Position numbers and translations under genes: made by a program. Shown piece by piece: positions 3,984-58,394 of a DNA stretch of 64,000 bases. Position 1 is the stretch's first letter, and each line of letters begins with the position of its first letter. The notes beneath the pieces are model-generated. The model ran no database searches. It was not told the origin of the DNA and was given only the letters and a program-made list of their open reading frames with translations. Location: positions 62,001 through 126,000 of IMG/VR virus record IMGVR_UViG_3300020473_000011; one strand, 5' to 3'.

Positions 3984-3989
3984 AGTACG

Positions 3990-4020
3990 ACGAAAAGAGG
4001 TCTTAAAGACCTCTTTTCGT
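3990..4020. terminator. bidirectional intrinsic terminator
   Basis: perfect inverted repeat ACGAAAAGAGGTCT-TAA-AGACCTCTTTTCGT between convergent genes. Confidence 0.85.
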
Positions 4021-4024
4021 TAGA

Positions 4025-5590: not shown

Positions 5591-5652
5591 AGTCTCAATT
5601 TTCCTTAGTTAAGTAGTACGAGGCTGCACTTAGGCCGCCCCGTGCAACAAGA

Positions 5653-7257: not shown

Positions 7258-7279
7258 AGTCTCAATTTTTCCTTATCCA

Positions 7280-7840: not shown

Positions 7841-7849
7841 AGTGTCTCC

Positions 7850-8437: not shown

Positions 8438-8454
8438 AAAGAAACGCCCCTAAG

Positions 8455-10007: not shown

Positions 10008-10020
10008 ATCGTAGTCCTCA

Positions 10021-10692
10021 TTATGTTGTAATTGGGAAATCCGATGCAACTTTGACCAAGGCATCGGGTAATGTCGTGTTACATAGCCCTGTCGTAAAGC
10101 CATAGTTTCTGGGCGTAATTGCCATGGGCTGTGCGACACTGCCGTAGCGTTCGTCATCAAGCTTAAAGTCAATAAATGCAGGCTGCGAGCCGTCGTAGTT
10201 TGCTTCTAACGTACCTTGCATAAAGTTCTTAACGGGTGCCATTGTCCAGACGTGATGAAGAGAACCCTCAACGTCACCTTCGGCTTCGCTGATCCAAAGC
10301 AGTGTTCCTCGGTTCTTGTGTGCTAGCTGGTCGGCCACTCCTGTCTTACCATTTATCTGCATCGAAAGAATGGAACCACTTAGGTCGCTGACATAGTAGA
10401 CATGCCCCAACTTCTCGGTGTTCCGTCTTGCCGATTGAGTGAAACCCCAGTGTCCATTCGAGACCTTAGCAGGCATCAATAGATTTGCGATATGACCTAC
10501 ATACGTCAGCTCATTGATGCGAGAGACGTCTAAAGCATCAGGCGACGCTTGCCATACGGGCTGGCCGTCGGCGGGTCTCACGAGCAGCGTATTAAGCACC
10601 ACGTCGGGGTCTTCATCAAAGACAAGTACCTTCGTCTCAACCGTCCTAAAGGCTGTATTAAGTCCAAACTCGGTTGGTACATACCAAAGCAT
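10021..10692 (-). CDS. hypothetical/structural protein
   Basis: AGGAG RBS, in operon. Confidence 0.65.
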   Translation of the reverse strand: MLWYVPTEFGLNTAFRTVETKVLVFDEDPDVVLNTLLVRPADGQPVWQASPDALDVSRINELTYVGHIANLLMPAKVSNGHWGFTQSARRNTEKLGHVYYVSDLSGSILSMQINGKTGVADQLAHKNRGTLLWISEAEGDVEGSLHHVWTMAPVKNFMQGTLEANYDGSQPAFIDFKLDDERYGSVAQPMAITPRNYGFTTGLCNTTLPDALVKVASDFPITT

Positions 10693-10723
10693 GTGTTCGT
10701 ACTCCTAGTTGATATAGGGAAAT

Positions 10724-10747
10724 AAAGGGGCATAAGCTGCCCCTTTT
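10724..10747. terminator. intrinsic terminator inside structural cluster
   Basis: AAAGGGGCA-TAAGC-TGCCCCTTTT hairpin. Confidence 0.7.
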
Positions 10748-10756
10748 AACTAAGGG

Positions 10757-11500
10757 TTAAGCAAAAGCGATGGCTTCTTTGTCAGCAATCTCTTGCAAAG
10801 ACTTACCAAAGCTTGGCATGGCGGCTAGGCGAGCTTCCATCGCGTCTCGCATGGTTGACCAGTCGTGGTACATGTTCATAAAAAACATGTTGATGTAGCC
10901 ATCAGCCAGTTGTACAACAGATTCACTCTTGTCAACAGCTGTTGAGGTTAAGCGTACGGGCTGGTTCGTCGTAGTATCACCAATACCTAATTGAAGATGC
11001 TTAATTTCCTCTGGAAGGGCTGCCACATCAAATGGCGCAGTACCATCCCAAAGCTCAACCTCCCACGTGCTTATATCGGCTGTCGACCGCGTAGCATGTG
11101 TATCAACAATAAGATACGCTTTTGTGGCGGTTCCCGTGTTTCGGATGTCCGCCGTAAACTGCTCAGCGGGTGTAAAACGGAAGGCTGGGACAGTCGGGCA
11201 CAAGTTGCGCAGTGCATCGAGGTCTGTGTGGTATGATTCTATGTTACCAGCGTCGTGACGGAAGTAGCGGCTTTGGATAGCAAACTCATCGTTATCCATG
11301 TAGGCCAGATCCCATTTTGTCATACCCACAAGGGACAGAAGAATATTATTCGCCTCATCGGTAACCACAAGCATTGCAGGCTTGTTTTCCAAGTAGCGCG
11401 TTGGCTCGTTTGCAGGGTCGGTTTGCAAGAAGGCAAGCTGAGTGTCTTGCGTTTGCTTTTCTGACATGTAACTAATAAGTGGGTGAATATATACAGCCAT
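10757..11500 (-). CDS. putative virion structural protein, paralog of 12383-13231
   Basis: GTATKAYLIVD / LGIGD / VRL pattern matches GEVDKVYVLID / LPVGT / VQL of 12383. Confidence 0.6.
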   Translation of the reverse strand: MAVYIHPLISYMSEKQTQDTQLAFLQTDPANEPTRYLENKPAMLVVTDEANNILLSLVGMTKWDLAYMDNDEFAIQSRYFRHDAGNIESYHTDLDALRNLCPTVPAFRFTPAEQFTADIRNTGTATKAYLIVDTHATRSTADISTWEVELWDGTAPFDVAALPEEIKHLQLGIGDTTTNQPVRLTSTAVDKSESVVQLADGYINMFFMNMYHDWSTMRDAMEARLAAMPSFGKSLQEIADKEAIAFA

Positions 11501-11512
11501 GACAAGGTCTCC

Positions 11513-12301
11513 TTAAACGATATTACATTTGATGCGCAGTGATACGGGTGCCACCTGATCAGTGATTTGGTCGTGCCCCTTTGATAGCTCTAAGTCGGCA
11601 CCCGAACCCACACCACCGACTGTCCCGATCACAATTGGCTGGCGGTCTACATAAGCCTCGGGGCGCATAATAGCTAATGTGGCTTGATACTCATTGTTTT
11701 GTGTCGGGTGGTCAATGACATGGTCTGATGCGTGTATGGCGCTTGGTGACCCCGTGATAGCGAACCATGTGGGTCTGTCCTCTACGAGCTGGCCAGCGGC
11801 GCTGTAAGCCTGTAGGTTGGAGAACTTTGAACTCTTATATAACCACGCAGCCTTACTGGCGCTGAATGACCAATCGAGCATCCACGACAAGTCACTATTT
11901 GGGTTGCGTGGCACGGGTGGGAAGGTTTCACTCGTAGCCGACACAGCACCCTCGTGCATCTCTGCGCCATTTGCGAGTGCTGACACCCCTACGGCATAAG
12001 AGTACGAATCGTCGTCACCACTCGTGGTCAGACGAAAGTAACCAATACGGCGTTCATCTAAAGGGAGCGGAGCAAGGTCACTTGTTAGTGTGTCGCCACG
12101 GTTGTCAAAATACATACCGTAGTAAAATTCCTCGGGTGACGGCATGCGGCCTGTAAATAAGTGGATGTGCCAACCACGAGAGGCATTTCCGTTAGTTTTT
12201 TGGTTGGTCGGCGCATAAAATGCAGGTGAACCCCAGCGCTGCGCAATCATTTGAAGCGCTTCGGCTGGTAAGAGTGTATTCATGTCGTAAGTGTCTGCCA
12301 T
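11513..12301 (-). CDS. putative virion structural protein (FTG..P / GTVG..GSGADL family)
   Basis: IHLFTGRMPSPEE, PTWFAI, GTVGGVGSGADLEL. Confidence 0.65.
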   Translation of the reverse strand: MADTYDMNTLLPAEALQMIAQRWGSPAFYAPTNQKTNGNASRGWHIHLFTGRMPSPEEFYYGMYFDNRGDTLTSDLAPLPLDERRIGYFRLTTSGDDDSYSYAVGVSALANGAEMHEGAVSATSETFPPVPRNPNSDLSWMLDWSFSASKAAWLYKSSKFSNLQAYSAAGQLVEDRPTWFAITGSPSAIHASDHVIDHPTQNNEYQATLAIMRPEAYVDRQPIVIGTVGGVGSGADLELSKGHDQITDQVAPVSLRIKCNIV

Positions 12302-12382
12302 GATATAACCTTGTAAGTTTTTCTAAAAGTGATTAGTAGGCACCAAGTGGCACCTACCGCAATTATGTCGGGTCACAAACTA

Positions 12383-13231
12383 CTAGCTGTGGTTAACGAT
12401 GTTGTAGCCACGTTCAGTAGCGAGCGCCGTCATAGCGTTCATCAACTCAGTCTCACTCTCGGGGGTCATAACAGGCATCACAACGCGTATTGCGTCCTGT
12501 ATAATCAATCGGCTTTCATTTTGCAGATTGGACTCTGATAATTGTACAACATCGTCACCCAACGTGCCTACAGGAAGTTGTAGCCAACGCACATCAAGCG
12601 AGGCATCGCCTTCCTTTATTTGCTCAGGTGTTGCGGTTGCAAGCAGCTGCGGGTCAGGTGCATTAGGCAAGCGCTGTTGTAGTGGGTCTTCGTCAATCAA
12701 TACATAAACTTTGTCGACTTCACCTGAGCCAACCAGTGTCGAATGATAGATAACCTCACCGCTATCGAGCACACCCGCAGGGTCAGGGATCACATCTATA
12801 ACCAGCGTCAGCTTAGGGGCTGATAAGACAAAGCCACCAGCACCACTGGCACTACCAACGTTCATATCAAGATAGGGTTGGCTGAATTTACCAGCGCCAA
12901 GCCCTCGCAAACGCCCAAAGTAGCGCAGAGTGTGCGGTGTTACCGCAGGGTCGCTGTCGCGGCCAACATGGCCATTTTGTATTGAGACAGAGACACGCGG
13001 TGTCATGAGAAGTTGGCCAGCTGCATCATAGGCCAGCAAGCGCCCATAACCAAGAGTGCTCGTTATCTCGGTGTTATTGTTAAAACCTAGGTTGCCATCG
13101 CCCTTACCTGCTAAGTAAGAGATATTGGTATTCAGTGTCAGGGTCTTTGCTTGCGACGCCTCACGTACGATGCGCTGAGATTCTTTATTCGCCTCTAGCG
13201 TATAGTGTTGAATGTACTTAGATTCACTCAT
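12383..13231 (-). CDS. putative virion structural protein
   Basis: paralogous segments with 10757-11500. Confidence 0.6.
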   Translation of the reverse strand: MSESKYIQHYTLEANKESQRIVREASQAKTLTLNTNISYLAGKGDGNLGFNNNTEITSTLGYGRLLAYDAAGQLLMTPRVSVSIQNGHVGRDSDPAVTPHTLRYFGRLRGLGAGKFSQPYLDMNVGSASGAGGFVLSAPKLTLVIDVIPDPAGVLDSGEVIYHSTLVGSGEVDKVYVLIDEDPLQQRLPNAPDPQLLATATPEQIKEGDASLDVRWLQLPVGTLGDDVVQLSESNLQNESRLIIQDAIRVVMPVMTPESETELMNAMTALATERGYNIVNHS

Positions 13232-13235
13232 GTGT

Positions 13236-14006
13236 TTAAGATCCTAATTTTGGTATATTGATACGGCCGATTTCGACCGAGCTTGGGTACATGAAAGTCT
13301 TACCCCTATAGGGGTCAAGAATGACCCATTGTTCTCCTAGCCATATATCGGCCTCCGACCCGTAGGTGCCTACCGTCAGTGGGATGCCACCACGAAAGTC
13401 AAAGAGAAGGTAGTCAGCGGGGTAGGATGCTGAATACAACCCTGTGACCTCGCCGTCACCAAACCAACTGCGCAGTCGTGGGTTAAATGCACTTTTACGA
13501 GCCAGTACTGCCCACTTGTAAGGTGCAACGACCCATGCGTTAGCGTCGTCGGTACCACAGCACGTGAACGGGCTGTCATAGCGTATACTTGTCTTGTGCA
13601 TCTTGACGTCAGAGGCAGGTACGAGGCACAGCGTCGAGCTGCCATCATGGCCACTAGACACACCGTTCAGCTGACTAATTTTCTCGAAGTCTTCTAACCA
13701 CTCAGCACTAAGCAGTGTTGCTGCGTCGGTAAACCCCATGAACTCAGTACCGTAATAGTAGCGCGACCATGTGCCCGTATTTTTTCGTTCCGAATAAGCA
13801 TTGGGCGCAATCGGAAGAGAAGCAGGGTCAATAAGCTGAACACCGTACTTACACTCTGTTTCTGATGGCGGCTCGGAGTACATGAAGAACAGTGCCAAGT
13901 CGTCATCAGCCAAGGCATCTTTAAGCCACTTTCGAAGAGACGTGTTAGGGCTTAGACTCGTTACGAAGTCCTGTGATACCCCAATTAGCTCGGCCACATT
14001 TGACAT
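13236..14006 (-). CDS. putative virion structural protein, duplicate of 14008-14778
   Basis: same length (256 aa), near-identical scaffold, TVGTYGSEAD motif. Confidence 0.7.
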   Translation of the reverse strand: MSNVAELIGVSQDFVTSLSPNTSLRKWLKDALADDDLALFFMYSEPPSETECKYGVQLIDPASLPIAPNAYSERKNTGTWSRYYYGTEFMGFTDAATLLSAEWLEDFEKISQLNGVSSGHDGSSTLCLVPASDVKMHKTSIRYDSPFTCCGTDDANAWVVAPYKWAVLARKSAFNPRLRSWFGDGEVTGLYSASYPADYLLFDFRGGIPLTVGTYGSEADIWLGEQWVILDPYRGKTFMYPSSVEIGRINIPKLGS

Positions 14007-14007
14007 A

Positions 14008-14778
14008 CTACGATCCTACTTTTGGTATATGTACGCGGCCTATTTCGACCGAACTTGGATAGACGTATGCACCACCTCTTGGGAATGACCGAAAATGGTC
14101 AAGGTGCTCACCCAGCCAGACGTCAGCCTCCGACCCGTAGGTGCCCACGGTTAGTGGGATGCCACCACGAAAGTCAAAGAGAAGGTAGTCAGCGGGGTAG
14201 TTCGTCCCTTTACTGTGCGGTTGTTCGCCGTCACCAAACCAGCTGCGCAGTCGCGGGTTAAATGCACTTTTACGAGCAAGAACCGCCCACTTAAAGGCAC
14301 CTCGTTTATTCGCGTTCGAGTAATAGGTTCCGCAGCGTGTGTAACTGTTGCTGTAGCGCACACCTGTCTTGTGCATCTTGACGTCAGCCGATGGCACGAG
14401 ACACATCGTCGAGCTGCCATCGTGTTCAAGGGACGCACCGTTCAGTTGATTAATTTTCTCGAAGTCTTCTAACCATTCAGCACTAAGCAGTGTTGCCGCG
14501 TCGTTAAATCCCATGTACTCAGTACCACTGTACCACGGGGAAAAGCGGCCACCCCTCCATGAGTGATAGGCATTTACAGGCAGTGGTAATGCTTTAGGGT
14601 CAATAAGCTGTACGCCATACTTACACTCAGTTTCTGATGGTGGGTCTGTGTACATAAAGAACAACGCTAAGTCATCATTAGCTAATGCCTCTTTAAGCCA
14701 CGTGCGAAGAGACGCTTTAGGGTTTAGACTCGTTAAAAAGTCTTGTGAAGCCCCAATAGGGGCTGCATTAAGTGACAT
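14008..14778 (-). CDS. putative virion structural protein, duplicate of 13236-14006
   Basis: as above. Confidence 0.7.
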   Translation of the reverse strand: MSLNAAPIGASQDFLTSLNPKASLRTWLKEALANDDLALFFMYTDPPSETECKYGVQLIDPKALPLPVNAYHSWRGGRFSPWYSGTEYMGFNDAATLLSAEWLEDFEKINQLNGASLEHDGSSTMCLVPSADVKMHKTGVRYSNSYTRCGTYYSNANKRGAFKWAVLARKSAFNPRLRSWFGDGEQPHSKGTNYPADYLLFDFRGGIPLTVGTYGSEADVWLGEHLDHFRSFPRGGAYVYPSSVEIGRVHIPKVGS

Positions 14779-14792
14779 AGGAATCTCGCTCT

Positions 14793-15488
14793 TTAGGTTG
14801 TGCTATAACTGACTTGTTTGAATTGGCCTCGGTAGACATCCCCGTCGGCTGGATAACGTTGGCTCTCACAAAAGAGCGCCGTTGCATCAAAGTTCATATC
14901 AGTGAACTCAAGCATGCTCGCCACGTTAGCAGGATCGACGACAAAGCGTATATCGGGATTTGGTGACCCCACCCAGCTTTCGGGTACATCGGGATCGCTC
15001 TTATAACGCGCTGCGATGCACACCCTCAAAATCGGATGTATCTCGTAGATGATGGACGTCGAGTTTGGATGCTGCCTACGGTAGGAAAACATTTCCCATG
15101 AACCTAACTTATACGTTGAGCTAGTGAACAGCGCATGCACTGTTGAGGTTGTAATCCACCCCATTAGGTCAATTGACAAGTTTGCACCCTCTCGTTTGAT
15201 AATATCAGTGAGTGGGTCGATGTGGCTTTGGTCAGCAAATGGGTCAAAGGCTTCCCGCACTTCTTCCATGGGGATAATGTGAAAATTAATGTACGACAAT
15301 TCCGTAAGTTTTACGGGCTTGCCATTGCGCAGGTCTTCATGATGTATCAGTGGCTTTGTCGAAATAAGGTCTATGTCACTCTTTGTACCAGCCATCAATC
15401 CTGTTCCCAAGTAACCTTGCTGGTATGAACGATCATAGGCAAACTGGTTGCCGACGCGTCGCATTAATTCTGGGCTGTAAACGGCCAT
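14793..15488 (-). CDS. hypothetical/structural protein
   Basis: AGGAG RBS, in operon. Confidence 0.65.
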   Translation of the reverse strand: MAVYSPELMRRVGNQFAYDRSYQQGYLGTGLMAGTKSDIDLISTKPLIHHEDLRNGKPVKLTELSYINFHIIPMEEVREAFDPFADQSHIDPLTDIIKREGANLSIDLMGWITTSTVHALFTSSTYKLGSWEMFSYRRQHPNSTSIIYEIHPILRVCIAARYKSDPDVPESWVGSPNPDIRFVVDPANVASMLEFTDMNFDATALFCESQRYPADGDVYRGQFKQVSYSTT

Positions 15489-15500
15489 AACGAGACTCCT

Positions 15501-16088
15501 TTAAAGTACAGGGCTATAAACGTTTAGAACAGGCAGCTCAGGGTCGGCCGTGGTCAGTGTCGCGTCGTGCACCACAATTTCGGCATTACTGTCAAAGATT
15601 GTCCCGATAGTGTGCATCACATAGATTGCACGCGAGGAATCGGCTGTACCTGACCACAGCGTTAAAGCCCATGTCACCGTCTGGTCACCCAACGTCGTGT
15701 GGTCAAACCCTTGTACAACGGTAGCCTGTTGTGGTTCACCAAAGAGTGCGACGGGCGCTGTGTAATTTGAAGTGACGCCGTCAATGTCATCATTCAGGTC
15801 ACTCGTTAACGTAATTGTTTGGTCATGGTTCGACCATGACATTGACTTTAGAAAATCAGGGCAGTAGCCCACGAGCTGGCCATTATAGCTTGATAGTTCA
15901 TCCGTTGGTGCCAACGGCGACCCCGTAGGATTTGTCCATTCAGCATCGAGTACACTTGTTAGCTGTGCAAGTGTTGGGGCTGCTCCCGTAAAGAAGTAGG
16001 TCGTTTGTGTCGCTATGTCGTCTGAGCGCTCAAACACATTTTTTAAGTAGGTCAATAAGCTTGTGCGATAGGCTTTTGAAAATTGCAT
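15501..16088 (-). CDS. putative virion structural protein (same family)
   Basis: YFFTGAAPT, VTWAL, HTIGT..AEIVV. Confidence 0.6.
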   Translation of the reverse strand: MQFSKAYRTSLLTYLKNVFERSDDIATQTTYFFTGAAPTLAQLTSVLDAEWTNPTGSPLAPTDELSSYNGQLVGYCPDFLKSMSWSNHDQTITLTSDLNDDIDGVTSNYTAPVALFGEPQQATVVQGFDHTTLGDQTVTWALTLWSGTADSSRAIYVMHTIGTIFDSNAEIVVHDATLTTADPELPVLNVYSPVL

Positions 16089-16145
16089 TTTAGAGTCTCC
16101 AAGAGGGCAATGCTGCCCTCGTTAAAAGAAAGGATTAAGGTCTTT

Positions 16146-18041
<1,896 letters not shown>

Positions 18042-18044
18042 GGA

Positions 18045-18896
18045 TTAAGCTCCTTGTAGCATAATAGGCGCAGTTTTCGTTTTGGGCATCACGTACTTTA
18101 AGCGATGGATCCGAATCTTTCGGGGAGCTTCGGTTTGGCCTGACTCAGCCCCTTTATGCAAAACTAAGTTTGCTGTTGGCTCTTCGTGAATATCACCGAC
18201 CGTCAGGAAATAGTTACTTTCTGGCCGTACGGCCATCGCTGACAGCTTAATAGACTTACCATCACGGCGCGTGAACTCTTTGGGCACAAACCCTGTTGCG
18301 TCATGCGATATAAAGGTCGTGTATGACGTTTGGTGACCCCATGGGTACATCAGCGCCCATGTCGGAGCCGCACCATTACCCAGCTGCTGTATTTCGTCTG
18401 AGGGTTCAGCACCGTAGCTAACAGCTGCAAAGATTTCATTCCTTTTAAACTTATGATGGCGTACGGCATAACCATCTGTATCAACAAAGTCATCAGGGTT
18501 AACAGGTCTAAACTTGTTGGCCATAACATCTAAGCCATTAGGTGCACGCCCTTCAAGCGCAAAGGGGCTTTCTGTCGCCAGCTCAACATAGTCAGTTGCC
18601 TTGATATTAAAAAGCCCGCAAACGTGGTCGGATGGGCGACTACCATTAAAGAAGTAGATACCGTTCTCAACTTCTTCGGCTGAGGGTCTACGACCCGTGA
18701 ACAAGCAGATTGAATAGTTTTGGTACCCTTCAACCATATTACGCGTAATACCTTCGCGTATGCCTGCTTCTAGTCGTTCTTGCGACCCGAGGCTCATGTG
18801 TTCGAGCGTTAATTTGGGGGTATTTGGTTCGAGTGCCATTGCGGCAACCTCCGTCGTTAAACATGTAGTTAAACATTGGGTTATTGGCTCAGACAC
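18045..18896 (-). CDS. putative virion structural protein (same family); start uncertain
   Basis: ICLFTGRRPSAEE, PTWAL, LTVGD..ANLVL. Confidence 0.6.
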   Translation of the reverse strand: MSEPITQCLTTCLTTEVAAMALEPNTPKLTLEHMSLGSQERLEAGIREGITRNMVEGYQNYSICLFTGRRPSAEEVENGIYFFNGSRPSDHVCGLFNIKATDYVELATESPFALEGRAPNGLDVMANKFRPVNPDDFVDTDGYAVRHHKFKRNEIFAAVSYGAEPSDEIQQLGNGAAPTWALMYPWGHQTSYTTFISHDATGFVPKEFTRRDGKSIKLSAMAVRPESNYFLTVGDIHEEPTANLVLHKGAESGQTEAPRKIRIHRLKYVMPKTKTAPIMLQGA

Positions 18897-19976: not shown

Positions 19977-20000
19977 AAGGGAGCCTCGTGCTCCCTTTTT
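19977..20000 (+). terminator. intrinsic terminator (GGGAG stem family)
   Basis: AAGGGAGC-CTCGT-GCTCCCTTTTT. Confidence 0.8.
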
Positions 20001-20070
20001 CATTGTACAATGACCTAAATCAATAAATTAACTAAATCTCGTTGACAATTTAGTTAATTGCAATCAAAAT
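20000..20070 (+). promoter_or_regulatory. XRE gene promoter: box A + 12 bp inverted-repeat operator around -35
   Basis: perfect TCATTGTACAATGA 20000-20013; AATTAACTAAAT 20026-20037 / ATTTAGTTAATT 20048-20059 flank TTGACA; CAAAAT 17 bp later. Confidence 0.7.
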
Positions 20071-20105
20071 ACACGCAATTGAAACAAAGATTACGAGTAG
20101 CCCCT

Positions 20106-21095
20106 ATGGCCGACAGTCGAGAATACATTGAACTGGCTTTAAAGCTTTTAAAATGTAACCAAAAAGAATTAGCAGCGAAGCTAGATGTCTCCCCTGCCCA
20201 AATCACAAAGTGGAAGCAAGGCGAGAAAATGTCCGACGAAATGCAGCGTCGCATCGTAGCACTTGTAGATCTCGACCCTAACGAGATAGACTCCACTGGC
20301 TTCCCTCACATAAAGCTCATGACAGGTAGCGAAGAGACTGCCACCTTGTGGTGCGCCGTGATTAATTACACAGCCACGCTCGTACATAATGAATCAAAGG
20401 ATTGGTATGTGTGCGATGATCTTATGAAGGATGGGTACACGCTGGCGCGTAAGGTGCTCGACGTCGTGTCATCAGTTGGCATAGACATCACGATAAAACC
20501 TGATGGCCATCTTTATCTTGCGGATGTTGAGCCAATAGAAGAAAACCTACCGCTCATCAACGAAAAATACCGCATGTTGATCGAGTTGGATTTCATCAGA
20601 CGACTGCTTAGGGCTTATGTTTGCGTGCATGCGTGGGTGAGTACATTTATAGAGCCGACACTAGACGAACTAGGTGACATCTACCCGCTTGGGAACAAAG
20701 TCATCACAGACGTTTATGAGAACCTAATGCGTGTCGCGCTATTGAAAATTGTCTATGATCCAAACGACGAGTATCGGCACATACTTGACATAGCAAAGGC
20801 GAGTGCGCAGAACCTTGTTGATTACGCCCATGTAATTAAGCGCTTCAAGAGACTGGTAGCAAGCACCTCGTTACCGTTTTTAGCTGAGTACGACGAACTG
20901 CTTGTAAGTTCATATCATACGCTACGGGAAGACCTGCTACACGTACGTGATTCACTCCCTGCTAGTGGCCACCCAGACATTTACCAAAATGAGCTGCTAC
21001 GAAAGACCCGCGAGAATAATGCCATGCTACGGCTCGTGTGCGAAAAGCTCGGGATCCGCGAGGGCGACGTCTATAACCAGCTTAATAGTTTATAG
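20106..21095 (+). CDS. XRE/Cro-C1 HTH transcriptional regulator with large C-terminal domain
   Basis: CNQKELAAKLDVSPAQITKWKQG helix-turn-helix at N-terminus. Confidence 0.8.
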   Translation: MADSREYIELALKLLKCNQKELAAKLDVSPAQITKWKQGEKMSDEMQRRIVALVDLDPNEIDSTGFPHIKLMTGSEETATLWCAVINYTATLVHNESKDWYVCDDLMKDGYTLARKVLDVVSSVGIDITIKPDGHLYLADVEPIEENLPLINEKYRMLIELDFIRRLLRAYVCVHAWVSTFIEPTLDELGDIYPLGNKVITDVYENLMRVALLKIVYDPNDEYRHILDIAKASAQNLVDYAHVIKRFKRLVASTSLPFLAEYDELLVSSYHTLREDLLHVRDSLPASGHPDIYQNELLRKTRENNAMLRLVCEKLGIREGDVYNQLNSL

Positions 21096-21572: not shown

Positions 21573-22022
21573 TTACGGCATGACGGCATACCAGACACAG
21601 AACATCGCCCCTTCCCCTATCAGCATGAGGATGGCCATAGGGAGCACAATACCGATGAGTGCCCCTGCCTTCGGGTCGCGGCCTGTATACCATGGCGCTT
21701 CGATGAGTCTCCATATCGGATGATTCATGAGGTTACTGTATCGGTAGAGGATGGCGAGTATTAACCCTGTGACGATGAATGAGGCACCCTGCGTGAACGG
21801 GACGAGCTGCCATAGGAGCACATGCAGTACAGCCAGTATGATTATATAGCCACCGAGACAGCCGTACAGCTTTTTAATAAGCTTACCGAGGCGGGTTCTT
21901 GGCTCGGGCAATCCGATTGGCTTCTTCTGCCTAGGCTCAGTCTGTTGGAATAGGCGTATTGTGTCGATCAGCTCTTCATGGCTCATGGCAGACTTCTTGT
22001 TATTACCATAGGGGTTAGTCAT
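21573..22022 (-). CDS. membrane protein, hypothetical
   Basis: three hydrophobic segments; overlaps upstream gene end. Confidence 0.7.
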   Translation of the reverse strand: MTNPYGNNKKSAMSHEELIDTIRLFQQTEPRQKKPIGLPEPRTRLGKLIKKLYGCLGGYIIILAVLHVLLWQLVPFTQGASFIVTGLILAILYRYSNLMNHPIWRLIEAPWYTGRDPKAGALIGIVLPMAILMLIGEGAMFCVWYAVMP

Positions 22023-22347
22023 GGTCGGGTTCCTCGTTATTCTTAAAGAGCGCATCAATCTCTTCGTTCAGGGCTTTCATCTTATCTGACGTAAAGTACT
22101 GCGCTAGGTCGTCGGTCTCGTTTATGTTGTTAGTATGCGCTACATGTGGGTTTGTCGGTGCAAGGTCTATACGAAGGTTCAAAGTTCGCAGGTACTTCTC
22201 TAGGTACTTAATACCACCCTCAAAGGTACCGTTCTCCATCTGGGAAATCTGGCGTCTACCAATACCAAGTATCTCGGCTACCTGCTCTTGGGTAAGCGAC
22301 TTCTTTTTACGGGCGGCGGCAAGTACGCTCCCATCATATAAGGGCAT
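22015..22347 (-). CDS. HipB-like XRE HTH protein
   Basis: ARKKKSLTQEQVAEILGIGRRQISQMENG...YLRTLNLRIDL; GAGGA RBS before ATG 22347. Confidence 0.75.
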   Translation of the reverse strand: MPLYDGSVLAAARKKKSLTQEQVAEILGIGRRQISQMENGTFEGGIKYLEKYLRTLNLRIDLAPTNPHVAHTNNINETDDLAQYFTSDKMKALNEEIDALFKNNEEPDHD

Positions 22348-22371: not shown

Positions 22372-22447
22372 GTGCCTATATGGTAACAAACAGCTGTAAT
22401 GCGCCTATATAGTAAACTTTTAAGCGATTGTTACTATATGGTAGCAA
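22372..22447. promoter_or_regulatory. three CTATAT(G/A)GTA operator-like repeats at 29 bp spacing
   Basis: copies near 22372, 22401, 22430 upstream of HipB-like gene; last is a near palindrome. Confidence 0.6.
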
Positions 22448-22533
22448 TGCGCGTATCAAAGTGTCGGTGTACTGTCGTAGTATCAACGGGCGAAGAATAA
22501 CGGAAGGTGGGCAAGTTGTCTATGGGGGAAAAT

Positions 22534-22612
22534 AAAAACGACTGCAAGAAAACGACTGCACCCCTAGGATATTCGTAAATCTCAAAAAACGACTGCACAA
22601 AAGACGACTGCA
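22534..22612 (+). repeat. array 1 of AAAA(G)ACGACTGCA direct repeats (4 copies)
   Basis: copies end at 22546, 22560, 22597, 22612. Confidence 0.95.
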
Positions 22613-22630
22613 TGTTCTATGTGGGCAGTG

Positions 22631-22721
22631 CGTTGTACAATGATTGCGATGTAATGTGCGATGCCGCAGGGGGTTAGCTGTCGAGTAGGTCATTGACACG
22701 GCTATGGGTCGTTGCTAAAGT
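22631..22721 (+). promoter_or_regulatory. box A and sigma70-type promoter
   Basis: CGTTGTACAATGATT 22631-22645; TTGACA 22693-17-TAAAGT 22716. Confidence 0.7.
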
Positions 22722-22825
22722 GCCCGCCTGACTAATGCGCTGTGTAATGTACTAGGTGCTGTGCGTTAGTTATACCGAGACATAGATAACGTCAAAACGA
22801 CAATGAATAACATATAGGTTATTGT

Positions 22826-23554
22826 ATGAAACTTACGATTGCTAATGAGCTGCCGCCACTCCCAAATAGCGATAGACTCGTTCCGATGAAGCAAGCGCCC
22901 TCACGTCTAGTAAGAAGTAATGGCACGCTGGCTATAGTGAAAGACCCGTATCAGGATGAACACGGCGAACTACGTATGGATGTCCTGTGCTTACTCGAAC
23001 ATAAAATCAGTAAGGTGAAACTCAAAGGGAATGGCTGTGGTATCTGCTTCCAAAAAGGACGACTGCACTATCTCAAAGAGTTCGACAGTGTTGTGGCCTA
23101 TACGGAACCTACGCACTCTAAAGTGATTAATCTGGCTGAGGTAGAAGACGATGTCATGACCCTCTTGTCGGAGTTCTACACGGTTGGCGATGGCTTCGAC
23201 ATTGCGGGCATCACGTTACCAATCAGTGCTGACGAATCTGCTGACGATGCTCAGGCACTACATGACCTATTCACAGCCCCTAAACAGCCCCTAACGCTCA
23301 TTTACCACATCACCCCTCTGAAACGTACCAATAAACACAATAGAACGCTTGAGGTGCGATACAGCGTGGCTACCCGTTGCTACTCACTACGCTATCTGGT
23401 CTCTATGCAGGCTCCGACGGTACTCAGCCTTAAACTCGATGCTGACACGGCACCGAACGTTGTACGCAACTTTCTTATGATGGCGCTGGCACACTTTGAT
23501 GATGCACTCGACCAAGACCACGCTAACCCTGCGGGTACTGGGGACGCAGCATGA
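22826..23554 (+). CDS. hypothetical protein, paralog of 23750-24514
   Basis: shared SNG.LA..PY / DVL / VKL..N..G..F.K / HYL.EF blocks. Confidence 0.75.
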   Translation: MKLTIANELPPLPNSDRLVPMKQAPSRLVRSNGTLAIVKDPYQDEHGELRMDVLCLLEHKISKVKLKGNGCGICFQKGRLHYLKEFDSVVAYTEPTHSKVINLAEVEDDVMTLLSEFYTVGDGFDIAGITLPISADESADDAQALHDLFTAPKQPLTLIYHITPLKRTNKHNRTLEVRYSVATRCYSLRYLVSMQAPTVLSLKLDADTAPNVVRNFLMMALAHFDDALDQDHANPAGTGDAA

Positions 23555-23727
23555 AGACCTTGGAAAGCATGATTTACGATGCCGACGTAAAGCGTAGCCT
23601 GTGGGAAGACATCGCGAATGACCCACAAGCACTGGCAGATCGAGGCAAGACCCGTGAAGAAGCCCTGTACCAAATGAATTACTTTGAAGGTAGATTGGAC
23701 GCCCTGCGCGAGTTCCAGTCTCTTTAG
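23551..23727 (+). CDS. small hypothetical protein (58 aa, absent from ORF track)
   Basis: ATGA overlap with upstream stop; MKTLESMIYDADVKRSLWEDI...EFQSL. Confidence 0.65.
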   Translation: MKTLESMIYDADVKRSLWEDIANDPQALADRGKTREEALYQMNYFEGRLDALREFQSL

Positions 23728-23749
23728 AAAACGACTGCATAACGAGACG

Positions 23750-24514
23750 ATGATAATGATGAATGCAATAACACAAAGCCACTATATCGGCGTGGATATG
23801 GCCAATGGGCAAGACCAATCGGTAATGACACGCTTCCAACGATGTAAGAGTAATGGCAGCTTTGCACTGATAACAAAGCCCTACGAGAAGAAGCAGCACC
23901 CGAACCAACAAGGCGGGCTTGACCTGTATGTGGATGTACTCGACCACTACACGGGCAATATCAATAGCGTGAAACTGTACGAGAATAAGCGCGGCTTACA
24001 CTTTAAGAAGAGCGGCACACACTACCTTGATGACTTCACTAAAGATGCGGTCTATGTCCCGTACCAAACGAAAATCCTGTACGACGTGCAAACAGCGGTG
24101 GGTCACATCAATAGCATTGCAGTGGCGCTTGACTGCATCGTTGATACGTCACGTGTCACCATATCTGAGGTACCCCATGCGGATGAACTGTCTGTTGATG
24201 AGAGTGCGATGACACGGTTGGCCTTCTCAGGGGGTATGCCCCTCATGGCGTATCTTAAAAACACCCTTGTCCAACGCTACACCTTCGCGCTGACAGGCAC
24301 CAACAAAGACATCCGAATCAATATCGAGCTTTCGACAGGTGCACTGACGGCATACTCTGTGTCGACGAACCGATGGTACCAACTCGATGTCCTTGCGAAT
24401 GCCCCTGACTCAGCCCTACTGCCTGCATTGGTTCGCACTATCAATGACATTGATGAAGAGGCTATCCGTGATGATGTATTTTCGGTACACGGAGACAAAG
24501 CCTACATCGAGTAA
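23750..24514 (+). CDS. hypothetical protein, paralog of 22826-23554
   Basis: GAGAC leader; start may be 23750, 23756 or 23759. Confidence 0.75.
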   Translation: MIMMNAITQSHYIGVDMANGQDQSVMTRFQRCKSNGSFALITKPYEKKQHPNQQGGLDLYVDVLDHYTGNINSVKLYENKRGLHFKKSGTHYLDDFTKDAVYVPYQTKILYDVQTAVGHINSIAVALDCIVDTSRVTISEVPHADELSVDESAMTRLAFSGGMPLMAYLKNTLVQRYTFALTGTNKDIRINIELSTGALTAYSVSTNRWYQLDVLANAPDSALLPALVRTINDIDEEAIRDDVFSVHGDKAYIE

Positions 24515-24544
24515 AAGCTAGCCCCTTATTTGGCAGGTGGTGTG

Positions 24545-24784
24545 AAAAAGACGACTGCACTCAAAAGACGACTGCACCCCATCTGCCCTGTACCCCGCTC
24601 AAAAGACGACTGCATAACACGCTTCAATAAAACGACTGCATTACTGACACCTGTAACCCTGAAATAAAACGACTGCAAAAAGACGACTGCACTCATATTC
24701 TATAGGGGGTGGTGAAAAAGACGACTGCACTCAAAAGACGACTGCACCTGTAGACTGACCCCACCCCTCGAAAAGACGACTGCA
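24545..24784 (+). repeat. array 2 of AAAA(G)ACGACTGCA direct repeats (9 copies)
   Basis: copies end at 24559, 24576, 24614, 24640, 24677, 24691, 24729, 24746, 24784. Confidence 0.95.
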
Positions 24785-24792
24785 TATCTGCT

Positions 24793-24838
24793 AATCGTTG
24801 TACAAAGCTCTTGTGCCGCAGTGGTTTTCTGATACACT
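24793..24838 (+). promoter_or_regulatory. promoter: box A upstream, box B over -35
   Basis: AATCGTTGTACAA 24793; TTGTGCCGCAG 24811; TACACT 24833. Confidence 0.7.
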
Positions 24839-24886
24839 GGCGTCAACTAACCGACTAACACTAAACGATAATAGGAGCTGAGACCG

Positions 24887-25450
24887 ATGACAGCCATTAA
24901 CTATTCTGCGGGCTGCTTTGTTCGCGCCATCAAAAGCGGTGACCTCGATGCAGCCGCCCAGCAATCAAACGCTCAGTGCAGTATGACCAGTGGCCTTGCC
25001 CCAGTGCTTGCTGCTGAATACCCGCAAATCAAAGAGGCTGACGAAAAGTACAGTGCAGTCTTTAGCCCTGAGAAGAAAATGGGCACCTTCTCGCGCTGCC
25101 TGATGTGGGTCAACCAGAACCGCCCTGTCACCTTCTTTAACCTGTATGGCCAGCTAGACCGCAGCTCCAAACGAACGGCTGATGATGTTATCCGTGATTA
25201 TGCCTACCTTGAGCAGGCACTCGATACGATGGCAACTGACCTGCTTGATAACTTGAATGGGCGCTTGCACGTAGGCTTCCCGTTAATTGGCTGCGGCCGT
25301 GCTGGTGGTGATTGGGCTATCGTATCGCGTATGATTGAAACGGCCGTGTGTGCCAAAGGCATTAAGGTCACCGTGTTCGTGCCTGATGAAAAGTCCCAGC
25401 AAAAAGTGCGCGCTATCTATCCCTACGTCCACTTTGCTCAAGACGAATAG
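24887..25450 (+). CDS. macrodomain protein (Appr-1-p processing / ADP-ribose hydrolase-like)
   Basis: N...M.SGLA, NLYGQ, FPLIGCGRAGGDW motifs of phage macrodomains. Confidence 0.85.
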   Translation: MTAINYSAGCFVRAIKSGDLDAAAQQSNAQCSMTSGLAPVLAAEYPQIKEADEKYSAVFSPEKKMGTFSRCLMWVNQNRPVTFFNLYGQLDRSSKRTADDVIRDYAYLEQALDTMATDLLDNLNGRLHVGFPLIGCGRAGGDWAIVSRMIETAVCAKGIKVTVFVPDEKSQQKVRAIYPYVHFAQDE

Positions 25451-25501
25451 ACAAACGAAAGGTAAAAAACAAAGCTAAGTAATAATGAGGGTACGGGGGT
25501 C

Positions 25502-25635
25502 AAAAAGACGACTGCATCCAAAAGACGACTGCATGTTTTGGTTTAATGGCCAAGACAAAAGACACACTAAAGGGAGTATAGGCTCCCTTTCACACCCTCA
25601 CCTAGAAAAACGACTGCACTCGTTGTACAATGATT
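25502..25635 (+). repeat. array 3 of AAAA(G)ACGACTGCA (3 copies) followed by box A
   Basis: copies end at 25516, 25533, 25618; CGTTGTACAATGATT 25621-25635; GGGAG-stem hairpin 25569-25590. Confidence 0.9.
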
Positions 25636-25663: not shown

Positions 25664-26308
25664 ATGAGCAGAGCAACCCAAATCCTTGAGCGCGTATCTA
25701 TTATCTCTTACGACTTTGACATCAACAAAGTACTGGATGATGACGGCCGCCCACTTCCAAAAAAATTACTACGTGACATGGAGCGCGCTGATAAAGTTGA
25801 GCTTCGTAACCATGGCCAAGAGCTAACGGGTTACCGTGGCAACCGTATCGTATTTACGGCAGCGGGCTATGTTGAAGATGAAGGCTTAGACAAGGGTCAC
25901 TTCCTGATGGATAGCTACTTCTCAAAAGAGTTCGCGCTAAGCCAAACAATGACCGACGGCAAGCTTGTAGCAAACACCATCAATGGTGATAAGTTCAACG
26001 AAGCGTACGACGAAGAGCTTAAACACAAAGCGCTTAAATTTAAGCTGGTAACTGACACCGAAGCCAGTATCTCTGAGCTACTGACTAAGAAGCAGCTTGA
26101 CGCTGTCGTTACCGCGCATGACCTGTTCGATGGCAATAAGCGCGAAGTGTACGTGAATAGCTACGACAAGGAGACGCGTATTGGCTTCTCTGTGGCAATG
26201 AATGCGAGCTTACGTCTATCAGGTGATGACATCAAGAAACTTGATAAGTGTGGCTTTAAGTCAATCATCAAAGATAATGCAGGTGTGTCAGTTTACTTTG
26301 ACGCATAA
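25664..26308 (+). CDS. hypothetical protein (214 aa)
   Basis: GAGAC leader; N-terminus MSRATQILE. Confidence 0.8.
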   Translation: MSRATQILERVSIISYDFDINKVLDDDGRPLPKKLLRDMERADKVELRNHGQELTGYRGNRIVFTAAGYVEDEGLDKGHFLMDSYFSKEFALSQTMTDGKLVANTINGDKFNEAYDEELKHKALKFKLVTDTEASISELLTKKQLDAVVTAHDLFDGNKREVYVNSYDKETRIGFSVAMNASLRLSGDDIKKLDKCGFKSIIKDNAGVSVYFDA

Positions 26309-27790: not shown

Positions 27791-29359
27791 CTAATGGCAA
27801 ACTGGTGTTTTAGCAAGCTCAACGCCCTGTACCGCATGGGATGCCAGCGCAGCCCCCGCCTCAGAGAGCGTCAGGTATGTCTTATCGGCACCTGCGGCCT
27901 CGATACCTTCAACATAGTCACTGTGCATCGCGTTGGCAACAATAAGCCCATCATAGCCACCTTCACGCAGTTTACGTGCTGAGATCATACACGCTTCATG
28001 ACAATCCATGGCTAAGATACAGACATCAAGGTTTGACGTGTCGAGGTCTGCCCATACATTACCGTGCTCAGCATCCCCGTAAACAGCATTAAAGCCAAGG
28101 TTATCGACAAGCTCTTGGACTTTGTCAGGGTTCGAGTCGATACCGATAACAGCGACACCCGTTGCGGCAGTCGAACGGTAAGCAGCACGGCCAACTTTAC
28201 CCAGACCCATGACCAGCACTTTTGCATCACCCAGTGAGATTGGCTCTTCGTCAGGGTGACGGACATCGCGCTGGTACTTATTCAATCGGCGCTCGAATTT
28301 ATCGAACAGTGGGTGTGCGAAACGGTTAAGCGGCGCTGACACTAAGAATGATAAGGCCACGGCCAATGCCAGTGTTACGCTATAGTCAGGCATCACGGTT
28401 GCTGCTGCAATTAAGCCGAACTCAGAGTAGTTCGTCAAGGTTACCCCTGTTAAGAATGCAGTACGTGATGTCAGTTTAAAGGCCACCAGTAAGCCAAAGA
28501 ATAAGGCCGCCTTAATCGGCAGTAGTACCGCCATCGTTAACGCAAAGACCCAGTCATTCGCCGTCGGTAAGCCCTTCATGCCGATGGTTAGGAAGAAGGC
28601 AATCAGGAACATTTCTTTTAAGCCCCACATCTTACCGCCTAGCTCACCTGCCTTCGGGTGGGATGCTGCAAGGACACCCATAATAAGGGCACCCAGTTCA
28701 CCATGACCAATCCCCACCGAGTAGAAGCCGTAGCCACCTACCACAAGCGCAAGGAATAAGCCTGCCAGTAGTAACATTTCATCGTGACCACTGACGTCTA
28801 GGATCTTATTAACCACAGGACGGGCAAAGAATAGCAGTAGTAGCGCAGCTGACCACACCGACGGGATTTCACCACCAGCGACCAACATGAACGTAATAGC
28901 AATCAGGTCTTGTACAATAAGTATGCCGATGGCGAGCTGACCATGAATAGCCTTTAACTCTGACTTACTGCCGAGCACCTGTGCTGCCAGTACGGTTGAC
29001 GAGAAGGTCAGCGCTATCGACAACATAAAGGCAGTATGCCACGCAATGTCGAACCCAAAGTGGATGACAGGGGCTGCCACCAGCGCAGAGATACCAAAGT
29101 GTAAAATACTGGTACCCGCCACATCGGCCTTTAAAACTTTCTTAGGCTTGAGCTTTAGACCCACCGTAAAAAGCAAAAGAAGTACCCCGACGTGGGCAAG
29201 TTGGTCAAGGGTTTCCTTGCCGTTATCTTTAAGCCCAAGGTGGTCAGTCAGAATGAAGACCGCAAAGCCTGCGGCAAGATAACCAATCAGGCTGGGTAAG
29301 CCGACACGTGTAGCCAGTAGACCCAGTACAAAGGCCATACTGATCCAGATAAGTTCCAT
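27791..29359 (-). CDS. Kef-type cation:proton antiporter (CPA2) with TrkA-N/RCK domain
   Basis: GLPSLIGYL, GVLLLLFTVGL, FSST, LIVQD, SEFG; C-terminal GLGKVG and YGDA; GGAGG RBS. Confidence 0.92.
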   Translation of the reverse strand: MELIWISMAFVLGLLATRVGLPSLIGYLAAGFAVFILTDHLGLKDNGKETLDQLAHVGVLLLLFTVGLKLKPKKVLKADVAGTSILHFGISALVAAPVIHFGFDIAWHTAFMLSIALTFSSTVLAAQVLGSKSELKAIHGQLAIGILIVQDLIAITFMLVAGGEIPSVWSAALLLLFFARPVVNKILDVSGHDEMLLLAGLFLALVVGGYGFYSVGIGHGELGALIMGVLAASHPKAGELGGKMWGLKEMFLIAFFLTIGMKGLPTANDWVFALTMAVLLPIKAALFFGLLVAFKLTSRTAFLTGVTLTNYSEFGLIAAATVMPDYSVTLALAVALSFLVSAPLNRFAHPLFDKFERRLNKYQRDVRHPDEEPISLGDAKVLVMGLGKVGRAAYRSTAATGVAVIGIDSNPDKVQELVDNLGFNAVYGDAEHGNVWADLDTSNLDVCILAMDCHEACMISARKLREGGYDGLIVANAMHSDYVEGIEAAGADKTYLTLSEAGAALASHAVQGVELAKTPVCH

Positions 29360-29399
29360 AAAGGGCACCTCCAATAATCAATAGTCTGTGGGAAGCGCC

Positions 29400-31724: not shown

Positions 31725-32756
31725 TTACTCGTCGCGCATTGCGGCGAAGTACTCGTATACTTCTTTAGAGCGTTCGTGGCCTTGAGCTGGCATCAATTCG
31801 TTTGACCAGTTAAAGAAAGGCTTTTTCACATCGCGGATCATACTATCGACAGCCCAGACATACATCCAAGGAGACTCGAAGCGGTGAGGCTCTTTATTGT
31901 CCGTACGCATCTTTTGTAGTGCGGTCACTAAGCGGTAGCTTGGACACTGACGACCTTTCTCTGTCTGAGGCATCAATTCTTGGAATGTCATCATGATACT
32001 GTGCGCGTGGTTCTCATCCATCAAGTCTGCAACGAACCACCCTAAGATAACGCCGCTGATGTTAAAGGCTTTTGAGATAGTGGCAAGCTTGTACTTATCG
32101 AGTTTTGAAAGGCGCTCAATGATTTCAGGGTTTGCTTTGATGAACTTATACAGCTCTAATGGCGTTGGGCGTATGCTACGCGATTGACTAAAAGAGTCGA
32201 TACGTTGTGAGTTTGTGTTTGAGTTCTTCGTTAGTGCATAACGGCGCAGGTAGAAAAGACCGACGGCGATGGTCGCTAAGCGTGACTCAGTCAGACCCTG
32301 TGGCATTTCAAGCTTATTGATAACAAACAGATCCGCCAGTGTACGACGCTTACCCATATCCATTGTTAGGAGTGCTGAGTCATCAAGCTCACGCATGACC
32401 ATCAGTATCTGTGCTTCCCCTGATGCGATGACACTGCGTAGGCGGTGCTGACCATCCATAAAGCTACCACTCATACCGAACTTAACGCTTTCTCCGTTAT
32501 CGTACTGCCAGTTATTTTCTTTCATCATGCGAGAGTATTGGGCAACTAGGTTAACGTCTAGGTTACGCTGGTCGTCGTGATTGCAGTCTAGCCAGCGCTG
32601 TGCAATTTCAGGTGTGACACGTTCAAAGCTGATTGTAATGAATCGGTTTGGGTCGTGCGGTACAGGTAGTTGAACTGACGTTAAAACGTTCTCGGGTAGG
32701 TTGTTAGTCCCAAGCTTTCCCATATAGAAAATCCTCGTTAGTGACGGCATGGCCAT
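31725..32756 (-). CDS. ParB-N-like / DGQHR-motif protein
   Basis: VTPE.A..WL..N...R, Y..MM....W..NGE, DGQHRL, D.G..R..AD. Confidence 0.8.
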   Translation of the reverse strand: MAMPSLTRIFYMGKLGTNNLPENVLTSVQLPVPHDPNRFITISFERVTPEIAQRWLDCNHDDQRNLDVNLVAQYSRMMKENNWQYDNGESVKFGMSGSFMDGQHRLRSVIASGEAQILMVMRELDDSALLTMDMGKRRTLADLFVINKLEMPQGLTESRLATIAVGLFYLRRYALTKNSNTNSQRIDSFSQSRSIRPTPLELYKFIKANPEIIERLSKLDKYKLATISKAFNISGVILGWFVADLMDENHAHSIMMTFQELMPQTEKGRQCPSYRLVTALQKMRTDNKEPHRFESPWMYVWAVDSMIRDVKKPFFNWSNELMPAQGHERSKEVYEYFAAMRDE

Positions 32757-52865: not shown

Positions 52866-52938
52866 AGTATACATCGTTGTACAATGATTGCAATGGGTTG
52901 CGTTGAAAAAGTGAGCGATAATCGACTGCGGTGCAGTC
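52866..52938 (-). promoter_or_regulatory. promoter: box A in spacer, box B upstream
   Basis: TTGCAA-16(box A)-TATACT; GACTGC-GGT-GCAGTC 52924-52938. Confidence 0.8.
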
Positions 52939-58350: not shown

Positions 58351-58394
58351 CTGAATAGGCGTCATCTACTATCAGTCCAGTTACCAGTCCAGTT

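Follow-up and report, generated by a model that had tools for sequence, protein, structure and literature searches.

The DNA analyzed here, hereafter the window, is a stretch of 64 kb corresponding to positions 62001-126000 of the 281,557-bp IMG/VR record IMGVR_UViG_3300020473_000011. At 22533-25618 it carries three intergenic arrays of a short direct repeat, named E1, set around a group of genes on the plus strand. The first open reading frame (ORF) of the bracketed operon is ORF242 (22826-23554), followed by ORF58 (23551-23727), a small ORF with no family match, and by ORF254 (23750-24514), a paralogue of ORF242 (29% identity). Downstream are ORF187 (24887-25450), a predicted macrodomain protein of the ADP-ribose hydrolase type, and ORF214 (25664-26308), which has no family match. 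The prediction for ORF187 is based on phrog_335, on PDB macrodomains (E ~2e-4), and on a weak match to the DarG macrodomain. No Pfam, PHROG, or NCBIfam family was found for ORF242 or ORF254.

E1 is an asymmetric 14-bp word of the type AAAA(G)ACGACTGCA, in which an A-tract is joined to CGACTGCA. There are 19 occurrences of ACGACTGCA in the window, of which 18 lie at 22538-25618, all on the plus strand (0.85 expected), and AAAANACGACTGC with at most one mismatch is matched 23 times (0.42 expected). The AAAA(G)ACGACTGCA form itself is present in 18 co-directional copies at 22533-25618, with a chance expectation below 1. As a preliminary description of the window had reported, these copies form three intergenic arrays, of four, nine, and three copies, with two further lone copies at 23054 and 23726. 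Array 1 (22533-22612, plus strand) consists of two E1 pairs in a divergent intergenic region, at a strand switch of transcription, with steps of 14, 37, and 15 bp. Array 2 (24546-24784, plus strand) has nine copies with steps of 17, 38, 26, 37, 14, 38, 17, and 38 bp, and within it a 37-nt block containing an E1 pair is duplicated exactly, 170 bp apart (starts at 24542 and 24712). Array 3 (25503-25618, plus strand) has a pair at 25503 and 25520 and a lone site at 25605 (steps of 17 and 85 bp), with a terminator-like hairpin at 25569-25590 between the pair and the lone site. All of these steps are start-to-start periods; the spacing values first reported were numerically exact but had been described as end-to-end gaps. 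The unit is a head-to-tail pair of words 14-18 bp apart, and the long step of 37-38 bp includes a spacer of 23-24 bp. Only alternate sites are in phase, at 51-55 bp or ~5 helical turns.

A palindrome named box A follows each of the three arrays, its TTGTACAA core being at 22633, 24798, and 25623, in agreement with the preliminary description. After array 1, box A spans 22629-22644 (core at 22633-22640), and the leader of ORF242 then contains a sigma70-type promoter sequence at 22693-22721 (plus strand, TTGACA-17-TAAAGT); both are kept in the related contigs L221 and L223. Array 2 is followed by a promoter-like cassette of ORF187 (24794-24838, plus strand), kept in L221, in which box A precedes a -35 element TTGTGC, a 16-bp spacer, and a -10 element TACACT; the -35 element overlaps the CCGCAG half of a dyad. 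Box A after array 3 is at 25619-25634. The T4 late promoter word TATAAATA was not found within 1-27 kb of the window. A reading of E1 as a T7-type promoter, suggested by a resemblance to TAATACGACT that is greatest in another relative, L357, was rejected: no conserved initiation region follows the word, nine copies per 240 bp would be implausible, and T4-type phages rely on the host polymerase.

Homologues of ORF242 and ORF254 were found in a few uncultured lineages only. An IMG/VR scan with the single E1 word was swamped by chance matches, and the paired E1 pattern was used instead; several metagenome matches to the paired word proved to be coding repeats, and nine matches in bacterial genomes were coding repeats or chance. 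The layout of array 1 (four copies, with steps of 14-15, 37-38, and 15 bp) is kept in L221, L223, and L362. The ORF254 homologues of L221 and L223 have 55% and 57% identity to the window protein, and the ORF242 homologue of L362 has 49%; that of L223 is P0007. Array 2 again comes after the ORF254 homologue in L221 and L223, immediately upstream of the conserved box A, -35, and -10 cassette, and the L362 sequence ends too early to show this array. Across four to five diverged lineages, with proteins ~49-60% identical (L221, L223, and L362), the E1 words are near-invariant and occupy the same positions, and alignment showed that the spacers between them have diverged through substitutions and indels. 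Nevertheless, of 11 comparable long spacers, 10 measure 23-24 bp and one, in L221, measures 31 bp. The long interval with free sequence, already remarked on in the preliminary description, is therefore held in length across lineages, which suggests that the DNA itself is structurally constrained.

The copy number of array 2 changes in whole units, from nine (the window and L217) to six (X5) and three (L218 and L221). X5, a 40.8-kb contig, lacks 107 bp of the array, with a 9-nt overlap at the joint. L218 differs by one 170-bp unit, although this is a short-read k-mer contig and its count of three could be an assembler collapse. The lone E1 copies are less well kept. The copy within ORF242 (23054-23067, plus strand) is probably incidental because it is missing from the L221 homologue of that gene, and the copy at the junction of ORF58 and ORF254 (23726-23739, plus strand) is degenerate in L221 and absent in L223. 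Between its ORF58 and ORF254 homologues, L221 has an inserted gene (3318-4295) for a 325-aa protein with a radical-SAM-like CxxxCxxC motif, and the insertion point is exactly the window's lone E1 site at 23726. Homology with the relatives stops ~45 bp to the left of array 1. L221 also lacks a 345-aa helix-turn-helix (HTH) gene that lies to the left of array 1 in the window; the corresponding non-coding gap contains a tandem repeat of GTGATCGACCTAGC (2.5 copies at 1081-1110) and other short repeats.

E1 had been described as confined to a single 3-kb locus, but the stretch of the same contig directly past the right end of the window (L212) contains five additional copies, at L212 2768-3397, which is 2.3-2.9 kb beyond that end. 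This second locus, at 128 kb of the contig and 44 kb from the window arrays (84-88 kb), brackets an intact 90-aa gene, ORF90 (L212 3032-3304), on both sides. One E1 pair lies 50 bp upstream of the box A promoter of ORF90, and a second pair comes right after its terminator-like hairpin, where the next genes converge. ORF90 is bracketed in three lineages, with two copies upstream and two downstream in L212, four and six in L357, and four and at least four in L372. The ORF90 homologues of L357 and L372 are 86% and 80% identical, and the E1 steps there are 17, 37, and 17 bp. All 23 E1 copies in the arrays of the window and L212 are co-oriented with the bracketed genes. Across the 281-kb contig the paired pattern occurs at these two loci only, and ~131 kb of the contig contained no other E1 cluster and no minus-strand copy. 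No family match was found for ORF90. Residues 9-51 of ORF90 (HGLTAEQ ... VLKSHG, 32 aa from LT to HG) resemble a TAL-effector repeat, but we regard this as a chance resemblance because the phmmer E value of 6e-12 sums 19 target repeats, the best single i-Evalue being 83, and because the L357 and L372 homologues do not retain the HGLT signature.

Elsewhere on the contig are genes for a tail sheath protein (phrog_23, E 4e-73), a helicase, and a tRNA nucleotidyltransferase. The tail sheath is 39% identical to its counterparts in T4-like Rhizobium phages, and its matches among T4-type phages number in the thousands, which indicates that the replicon is a jumbo myophage from seawater and a distant member of the T4 superfamily. 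Several public runs, as well as one NCBI contig of a metagenome-assembled genome (MAG), contain near-identical copies; one copy had been binned with an Aestuariibacter MAG, only a weak hint to the host. No match to the array locus was obtained by megablast against phages and plasmids, nor to a 631-aa neighboring protein by tblastn against the same sets, and plasmid collections matched neither. No relatives were detected in 185,579 bacterial species genomes (GTDB). The comparison to KorB/ParB or iteron-Rep systems of plasmids, made in the preliminary description, thus receives no backing.

The box A promoters of the window resemble a class of element already described in T4-type phages. Box A has an TTGTACAA core within a palindrome of ~16 bp. 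The window has ~22 copies, and each other stretch of the contig examined has one to nine. Nine strict promoters of the form TTGnnn-box A-TAnnnT are present in the window (TTGCAA or TTGACA with TATACT or TATAAT), with box A placed exactly within the 16-18 bp spacer. Upstream, all nine have a dyad of the CTGC-N3-GCAG type, after which come a T-run and AT-rich DNA, and in four of the nine exactly 21 nt separate the end of the dyad from the -35 element. The PeSLs (promoter-early stem-loops) of T4-type phages are strong early promoters of a sigma70-like kind, AT-rich in their upstream part and equipped with a stem-loop that is specific to the lineage and lies mostly between the -35 and -10 elements (PMC2839356, Arbiol 2010; PMC4122927, Comeau 2014). 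In hyperplastic regions PeSLs are found repeatedly ahead of ORFans, and they mediate the shuffling of modules (PMC2839356; PMC4122927). The window promoters likewise have sigma70-like -35 and -10 elements, AT-rich upstream DNA, and a palindrome, and are repeated before small ORFans. Judged from these features, they are best explained as PeSL-type cassettes.

The upstream dyads include the sites named box B. The box B at 52920-52938 is a dyad GACTGC-N3-GCAGTC upstream of a minus-strand TTGCAA/box A/TATACT promoter that appears to be of the PeSL type, and those at 53876-53896 and 55913-55933 belong to similar putative cassettes. The site at 58333-58352 adjoins a box A. Two more candidate PeSL-type sites lie at 60830-60850, which on the minus strand comes after a strong hairpin and has a U-run, and at 61768-61788, where the dyad center is at about -61 from the inferred start site. 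The word AAAA(A/T)CGACTGC does form the left part of box B, as first noted, at six sites between 52.9 and 61.8 kb (52924, 53882, 55919, 58338, 60836, and 61774). The part shared with E1 amounts to one dyad arm, TCG, and the T-run on the other strand, and it occurs in five of the nine strict cassettes. Box B was also considered as an intrinsic terminator, which was convincing at only two of seven sites. In the preliminary description the distant promoters had been seen as a KorB-like regulon, read by the protein that would also occupy the arrays; since the box A and box B set is a known kind of phage cassette, no such global regulator is needed. What stands of that idea is that the conserved, strand-specific geometry of the arrays fits repeated protein binding and that a subset of the cassettes has the word. 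The arrays adjoin PeSL-type cassettes and have this word in common with them, but they consist of direct repeats, placed head to tail at fixed steps, that lack the potential to form a stem-loop. The E1 arrays are therefore not themselves PeSLs, which are defined by a promoter-coupled stem-loop.

We propose, with a probability of roughly 0.45, that the arrays are geometry-constrained sites for one DNA-binding protein that would insulate or regulate early-gene cassettes. Repeated, geometry-dependent binding of a single protein is suggested by the near-invariant words, the kept spacer length with free spacer sequence, the strict co-orientation, and conservation at ~50% protein identity. The units bracket small cassettes (ORF242-ORF58-ORF254, the macrodomain gene ORF187, ORF214, and ORF90), and where a gene follows, they sit directly upstream of a sigma70-like promoter of the putative PeSL type. 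One sequence-specific protein, probably phage-encoded, would dock repeatedly on the arrays and form a cooperative nucleoprotein block acting in cis on transcription of the cassettes. Such a block may insulate the cassettes from read-through, set the activity of the adjacent promoter, or both. The sites themselves, with their conservation, geometry, and positions, are observed directly, whereas binding of the protein and the direction of its effect on transcription are inferred.

Several observations weigh against this proposal. No binder of the E1 word was found, and the two HTH genes near array 1 in the window are not beside it in L221 and L223. The distance between the last E1 site and box A varies (~8, 17, 24, 35, and 46 bp) with no helical register, which speaks against a classical activator. 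Downstream of ORF90, where genes converge, no promoter follows the arrays, so that a role at promoters alone fails and the proposal holds only in its insulator or roadblock form. The arrays and box B have opposite orientations relative to transcription, and the RNA evidence, which comes from k-mer contigs, is weak. Because the distance varies without register and one set of arrays lies in a convergent gap, an insulating, roadblock, or cooperative regulatory role is favored over classical activation.

Some known systems come close to such a role. The stoperators of phage L5, read by gp71, are asymmetric sites of ~13-14 bp in short intergenic regions, all in one orientation, and are proposed to block elongating RNA polymerase; they are single sites spread over a whole temperate phage genome and are read by its immunity repressor. 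E1 is also asymmetric, lies in short intergenic regions, and has one orientation relative to transcription. E1 differs in forming pairs at just two loci in 281 kb rather than being dispersed genome-wide, and no immunity repressor could be assigned to it. The omega heptads of pSM19035 and the R1 ParR/parC system consist of contiguous 7- or 11-bp units on plasmids with an adjacent ParA or ParM motor, and in each a single small protein both regulates and organizes the DNA. They are like E1 in being arrays of short direct repeats upstream of several promoters; they are unlike it in that the E1 arrays are on a phage, have no motor, and are built from spaced pairs.

Foremost among the alternatives, though unlikely, are one or more replication origins with iterons, in which an initiator would polymerize on arrays at two loci 44 kb apart, as modeled on SPP1 oriL/oriR, P4 ori/crr, P1 incC/incA, or the T4 oriE iterons. 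Clustered, syntenic direct repeats that flank an operon recall P1 incC-repA-incA and P4 ori/crr, where arrays of one word likewise have a second set at a distance; array 1 lies at a transcription strand switch, and the ORF90 arrays in the convergent intergenic region serve no promoter. In contrast to the P1 and P4 systems, no initiator family, unwinding element, or plasmid state was detected here. Iteron origins have tandem iterons in a helical phase of ~21-22 bp, whereas E1 recurs at 14-18 and 37-38 bp. Arrays 1 and 2 have no AT-rich unwinding element beside them, the minimum 40-bp GC there being 0.275-0.35, and the 0.25 near array 3 is equaled at ~20 other places in the window. GC skew showed no clear turn. 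ORF242 and ORF254 match no initiator family, and no adjacent winged-helix initiator gene was found; the N-terminal domain that the two proteins have in common appears all-beta, without a match in PDB or BFVD, and its stand-alone relatives lie in dense, gap-free clusters of small genes.

The closest case in the same phage superfamily is T4 oriE, whose iterons are evenly spaced 12-mers in gene 5, next to the antisense genes repEA and repEB (PMC3016281). Both oriE and the E1 arrays are clusters of short direct repeats in T4-superfamily genomes, are syntenic in relatives, and lie near an early-type promoter and a transcription strand switch, and the function of both is unproven. The E1 sites differ in being intergenic 14-mers that are paired, recur at steps of 14-18 and 37-38 bp, and occupy two loci, and no repE-like genes are present. 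That the oriE iterons lie inside a gene, in another layout, and have an undefined role of their own (PMC3016281) counts against the origin reading.

It is also unlikely, slightly more so, that the arrays are merely recombination boundaries of mobile cassettes, with the same-orientation repeats providing homology or a recombinase target in a PeSL-like manner and without regulation. In T4-type phages, gene shuffling and the formation of mini-circles are mediated by PeSL repeats (PMC2839356). Cassettes flanked by arrays in one orientation would suit such exchange, as would the whole-unit shifts in copy number (170 bp in L218 and 107 bp in X5), the break in homology ~45 bp left of array 1, and the extra gene of L221 exactly at a lone E1 site. 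Passive homology, however, would not hold the words invariant and the spacers at 23-24 bp while the spacer sequence drifts. Among the ORFs scanned, no recombinase lies near either locus, and some differences in copy number, such as that of L218, could be assembler collapse. A variant with a protein component, in our view improbable, is that the arrays are protein-defined boundaries, an integron-like or attachment-site-like layer on the PeSL cassettes; a factor on the paired half-sites would then both insulate transcription and promote excision, insertion, or amplification.

Comparably improbable is a titration sink, an idea raised in the preliminary description, in which the arrays would absorb a factor recognizing the box B word and thereby set the threshold or delay of a regulon. 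An 11-12 nt word is common to six or seven promoter cassettes, the 23 array copies compare with ~7 promoter copies, and array copy number is variable, all of which would suit a sink. The word in box B is, however, only one dyad arm and a T-run, in the opposite orientation to transcription and confined to five of the nine strict cassettes; moreover, a sink requires no fixed 37-38 bp geometry, and it has no known binder here.

An element acting as RNA (a Rho-loading, rut-like region, a protein-sponge RNA, or a guide array) seems very unlikely. Where arrays lie 3' of genes, their long spacers are rich in C and poor in G on the plus strand in several lineages (e.g., 14 C and 3 G), with differing sequences; examples are at window 24576-24600 and 24746-24769, L221 5114-5144, and L357 677-699 and 731-753. 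This might be a rut-like feature or a second recognition feature, but rut sites need no exact spacing, and the box B copies are upstream of promoters. Folding of the arrays as RNA was no better than that of shuffled sequences on either strand (z of +0.89 and -0.36), and an Rfam scan of the window gave no family; no tRNA genes were found there either. Hairpins around E1 pairs, with a G-run on the left and a C-run on the right, were seen in some units only and inconsistently between lineages, and were dropped. Metatranscriptome contigs (100% identity) cover the flanking gene bodies and leave the arrays and the ORF242 leader uncovered; the evidence is weak, since k-mer contigs are interrupted at repeats and, at this depth, are fragmentary. 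An E1 pair taken as one repeat of ~31 bp with a 23-24 bp spacer has CRISPR-like dimensions, and a guide array had been named as the alternative in the preliminary description. We reject it because the spacers, rather than being unique acquisitions, have homologues in other lineages or duplicates within their own array; no Cas family was found in ~60 window ORFs scanned.

The least likely alternative, and a highly improbable one, is a partition centromere of a plasmid-like prophage bound by a ParB, ParR, or omega-type protein: the repeat units spaced at ~51-55 bp recall F sopC, the three arrays upstream of three promoters recall the omega-protein sites of pSM19035, and a gene with a DGQHR motif lies 6 kb away, but the genome is that of a T4-like myophage with no plasmid match and no relatives among the bacterial species genomes, a six-frame search of the window for ParA-type Walker motifs (KGGxGK[ST] and G..G.GK[ST]) was negative, the flanking ORFs have no Pfam family, and neither genes for an NTPase motor and a centromere-binding protein nor a low-copy plasmid replicon was found. 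That no Rep or ParA gene is adjacent had been stated in the preliminary description. The gene 6 kb away had there been called a ParB-N/DGQHR gene; the DGQHR motif is present at 32456, in an ORF at 31725-32756 (minus strand), but this ORF has no Pfam match to ParB or any other family and matches only phrog_5931, a PHROG without assigned function.

The N-terminal domain of ~80 aa common to ORF242 and ORF254 is encoded at 22895-23134 and 23807-24094, respectively, with the motifs SNG..F, PY, KQHPNQQ.GLD, and KLY.N.KGLHFKK. Its structure was modeled with confidence (pLDDT 88.5), and in this model the domain is all-beta, not winged-helix or ribbon-helix-helix. The full-length AlphaFold model of ORF242 (pLDDT 52) was too poor for use, and an ESM Atlas query with ORF254 was uninformative. 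Many uncultured phage sequences also encode the domain by itself, as a small protein (48 representatives); ten of these were scanned and had no Pfam family, and tblastn against cultured phages gave no match. Two of the stand-alone relatives lie within packed runs of small genes with no intergenic gaps, which indicates that the domain is not intrinsically tied to arrays and offers no support for a Rep or Par role.

Two HTH genes lie near array 1 in the window, a 345-aa HTH_3 gene at 20058-21095 and an Xre-type gene at 22015-22347 (minus strand). This adjacency is not conserved, because on the L221 and L223 contigs, which are short but retain the arrays, neither gene lies beside array 1. Upstream of the Xre-type gene, CTATATGGTAACAA-like words occur at 22376 and 22434 and, on the opposite strand, at 22428, forming a near-palindrome (22376-22447); these are probably the operators of the Xre-type repressor itself. 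An RNA contig ends at 22469. Few stretches of the window are as rich in AT as 19992-20093, just upstream of the HTH_3 gene (40-bp GC of 0.20); this stretch contains a box A, a TTGACA -35 element, and the inverted repeat TTAACTAAAT...ATTTAGTTAA.

Other genes of the window are of interest in their own right. A 521-aa PAPS-reductase-like protein is encoded at 2418-3983 (plus strand; phrog_424, E 8e-40); this protein and the DGQHR protein could have DNA-modification or ParB-like nuclease-superfamily functions. A Kef-type cation/proton antiporter with a TrkA-N domain (27791-29374, minus strand; Na_H_Exchanger E 3e-23 and TrkA_N E 1e-16) is unusual phage cargo, and a HipA-like kinase gene is present at 62930-63976 (minus strand; HipA_C, E 3e-48). 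A minus-strand operon of 15 kb and ~16 genes (4025-18896), in which seven genes scanned had no Pfam or PHROG family, includes adjacent tandem paralogues of 256 aa at 13236-14006 and 14008-14778 that are 69% identical; their similar-sized neighbors may belong to the same family.

T4-type phages shuffle accessory genes by means of repeated promoter and stem-loop cassettes (PMC2839356), and the promoter system surrounding the E1 arrays is thus already known in kind. Paired direct-repeat arrays of fixed geometry around the cassettes are not mentioned in the portions of PMC2839356, PMC4122927, and PMC3016281 drawn on here. How shuffled phage cassettes are insulated and timed is poorly understood, and oriE, the one known iteron cluster of T4, has no proven role. 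The arrays offer a clean, conserved cis-element of fixed geometry, set around ORFans and a predicted macrodomain gene that is a candidate for counter-defense, in an abundant marine jumbo phage. If the binder were identified, a new regulatory or architectural protein of phages would be defined, and it would become clear whether the arrays control transcription, replication, or cassette mobility.

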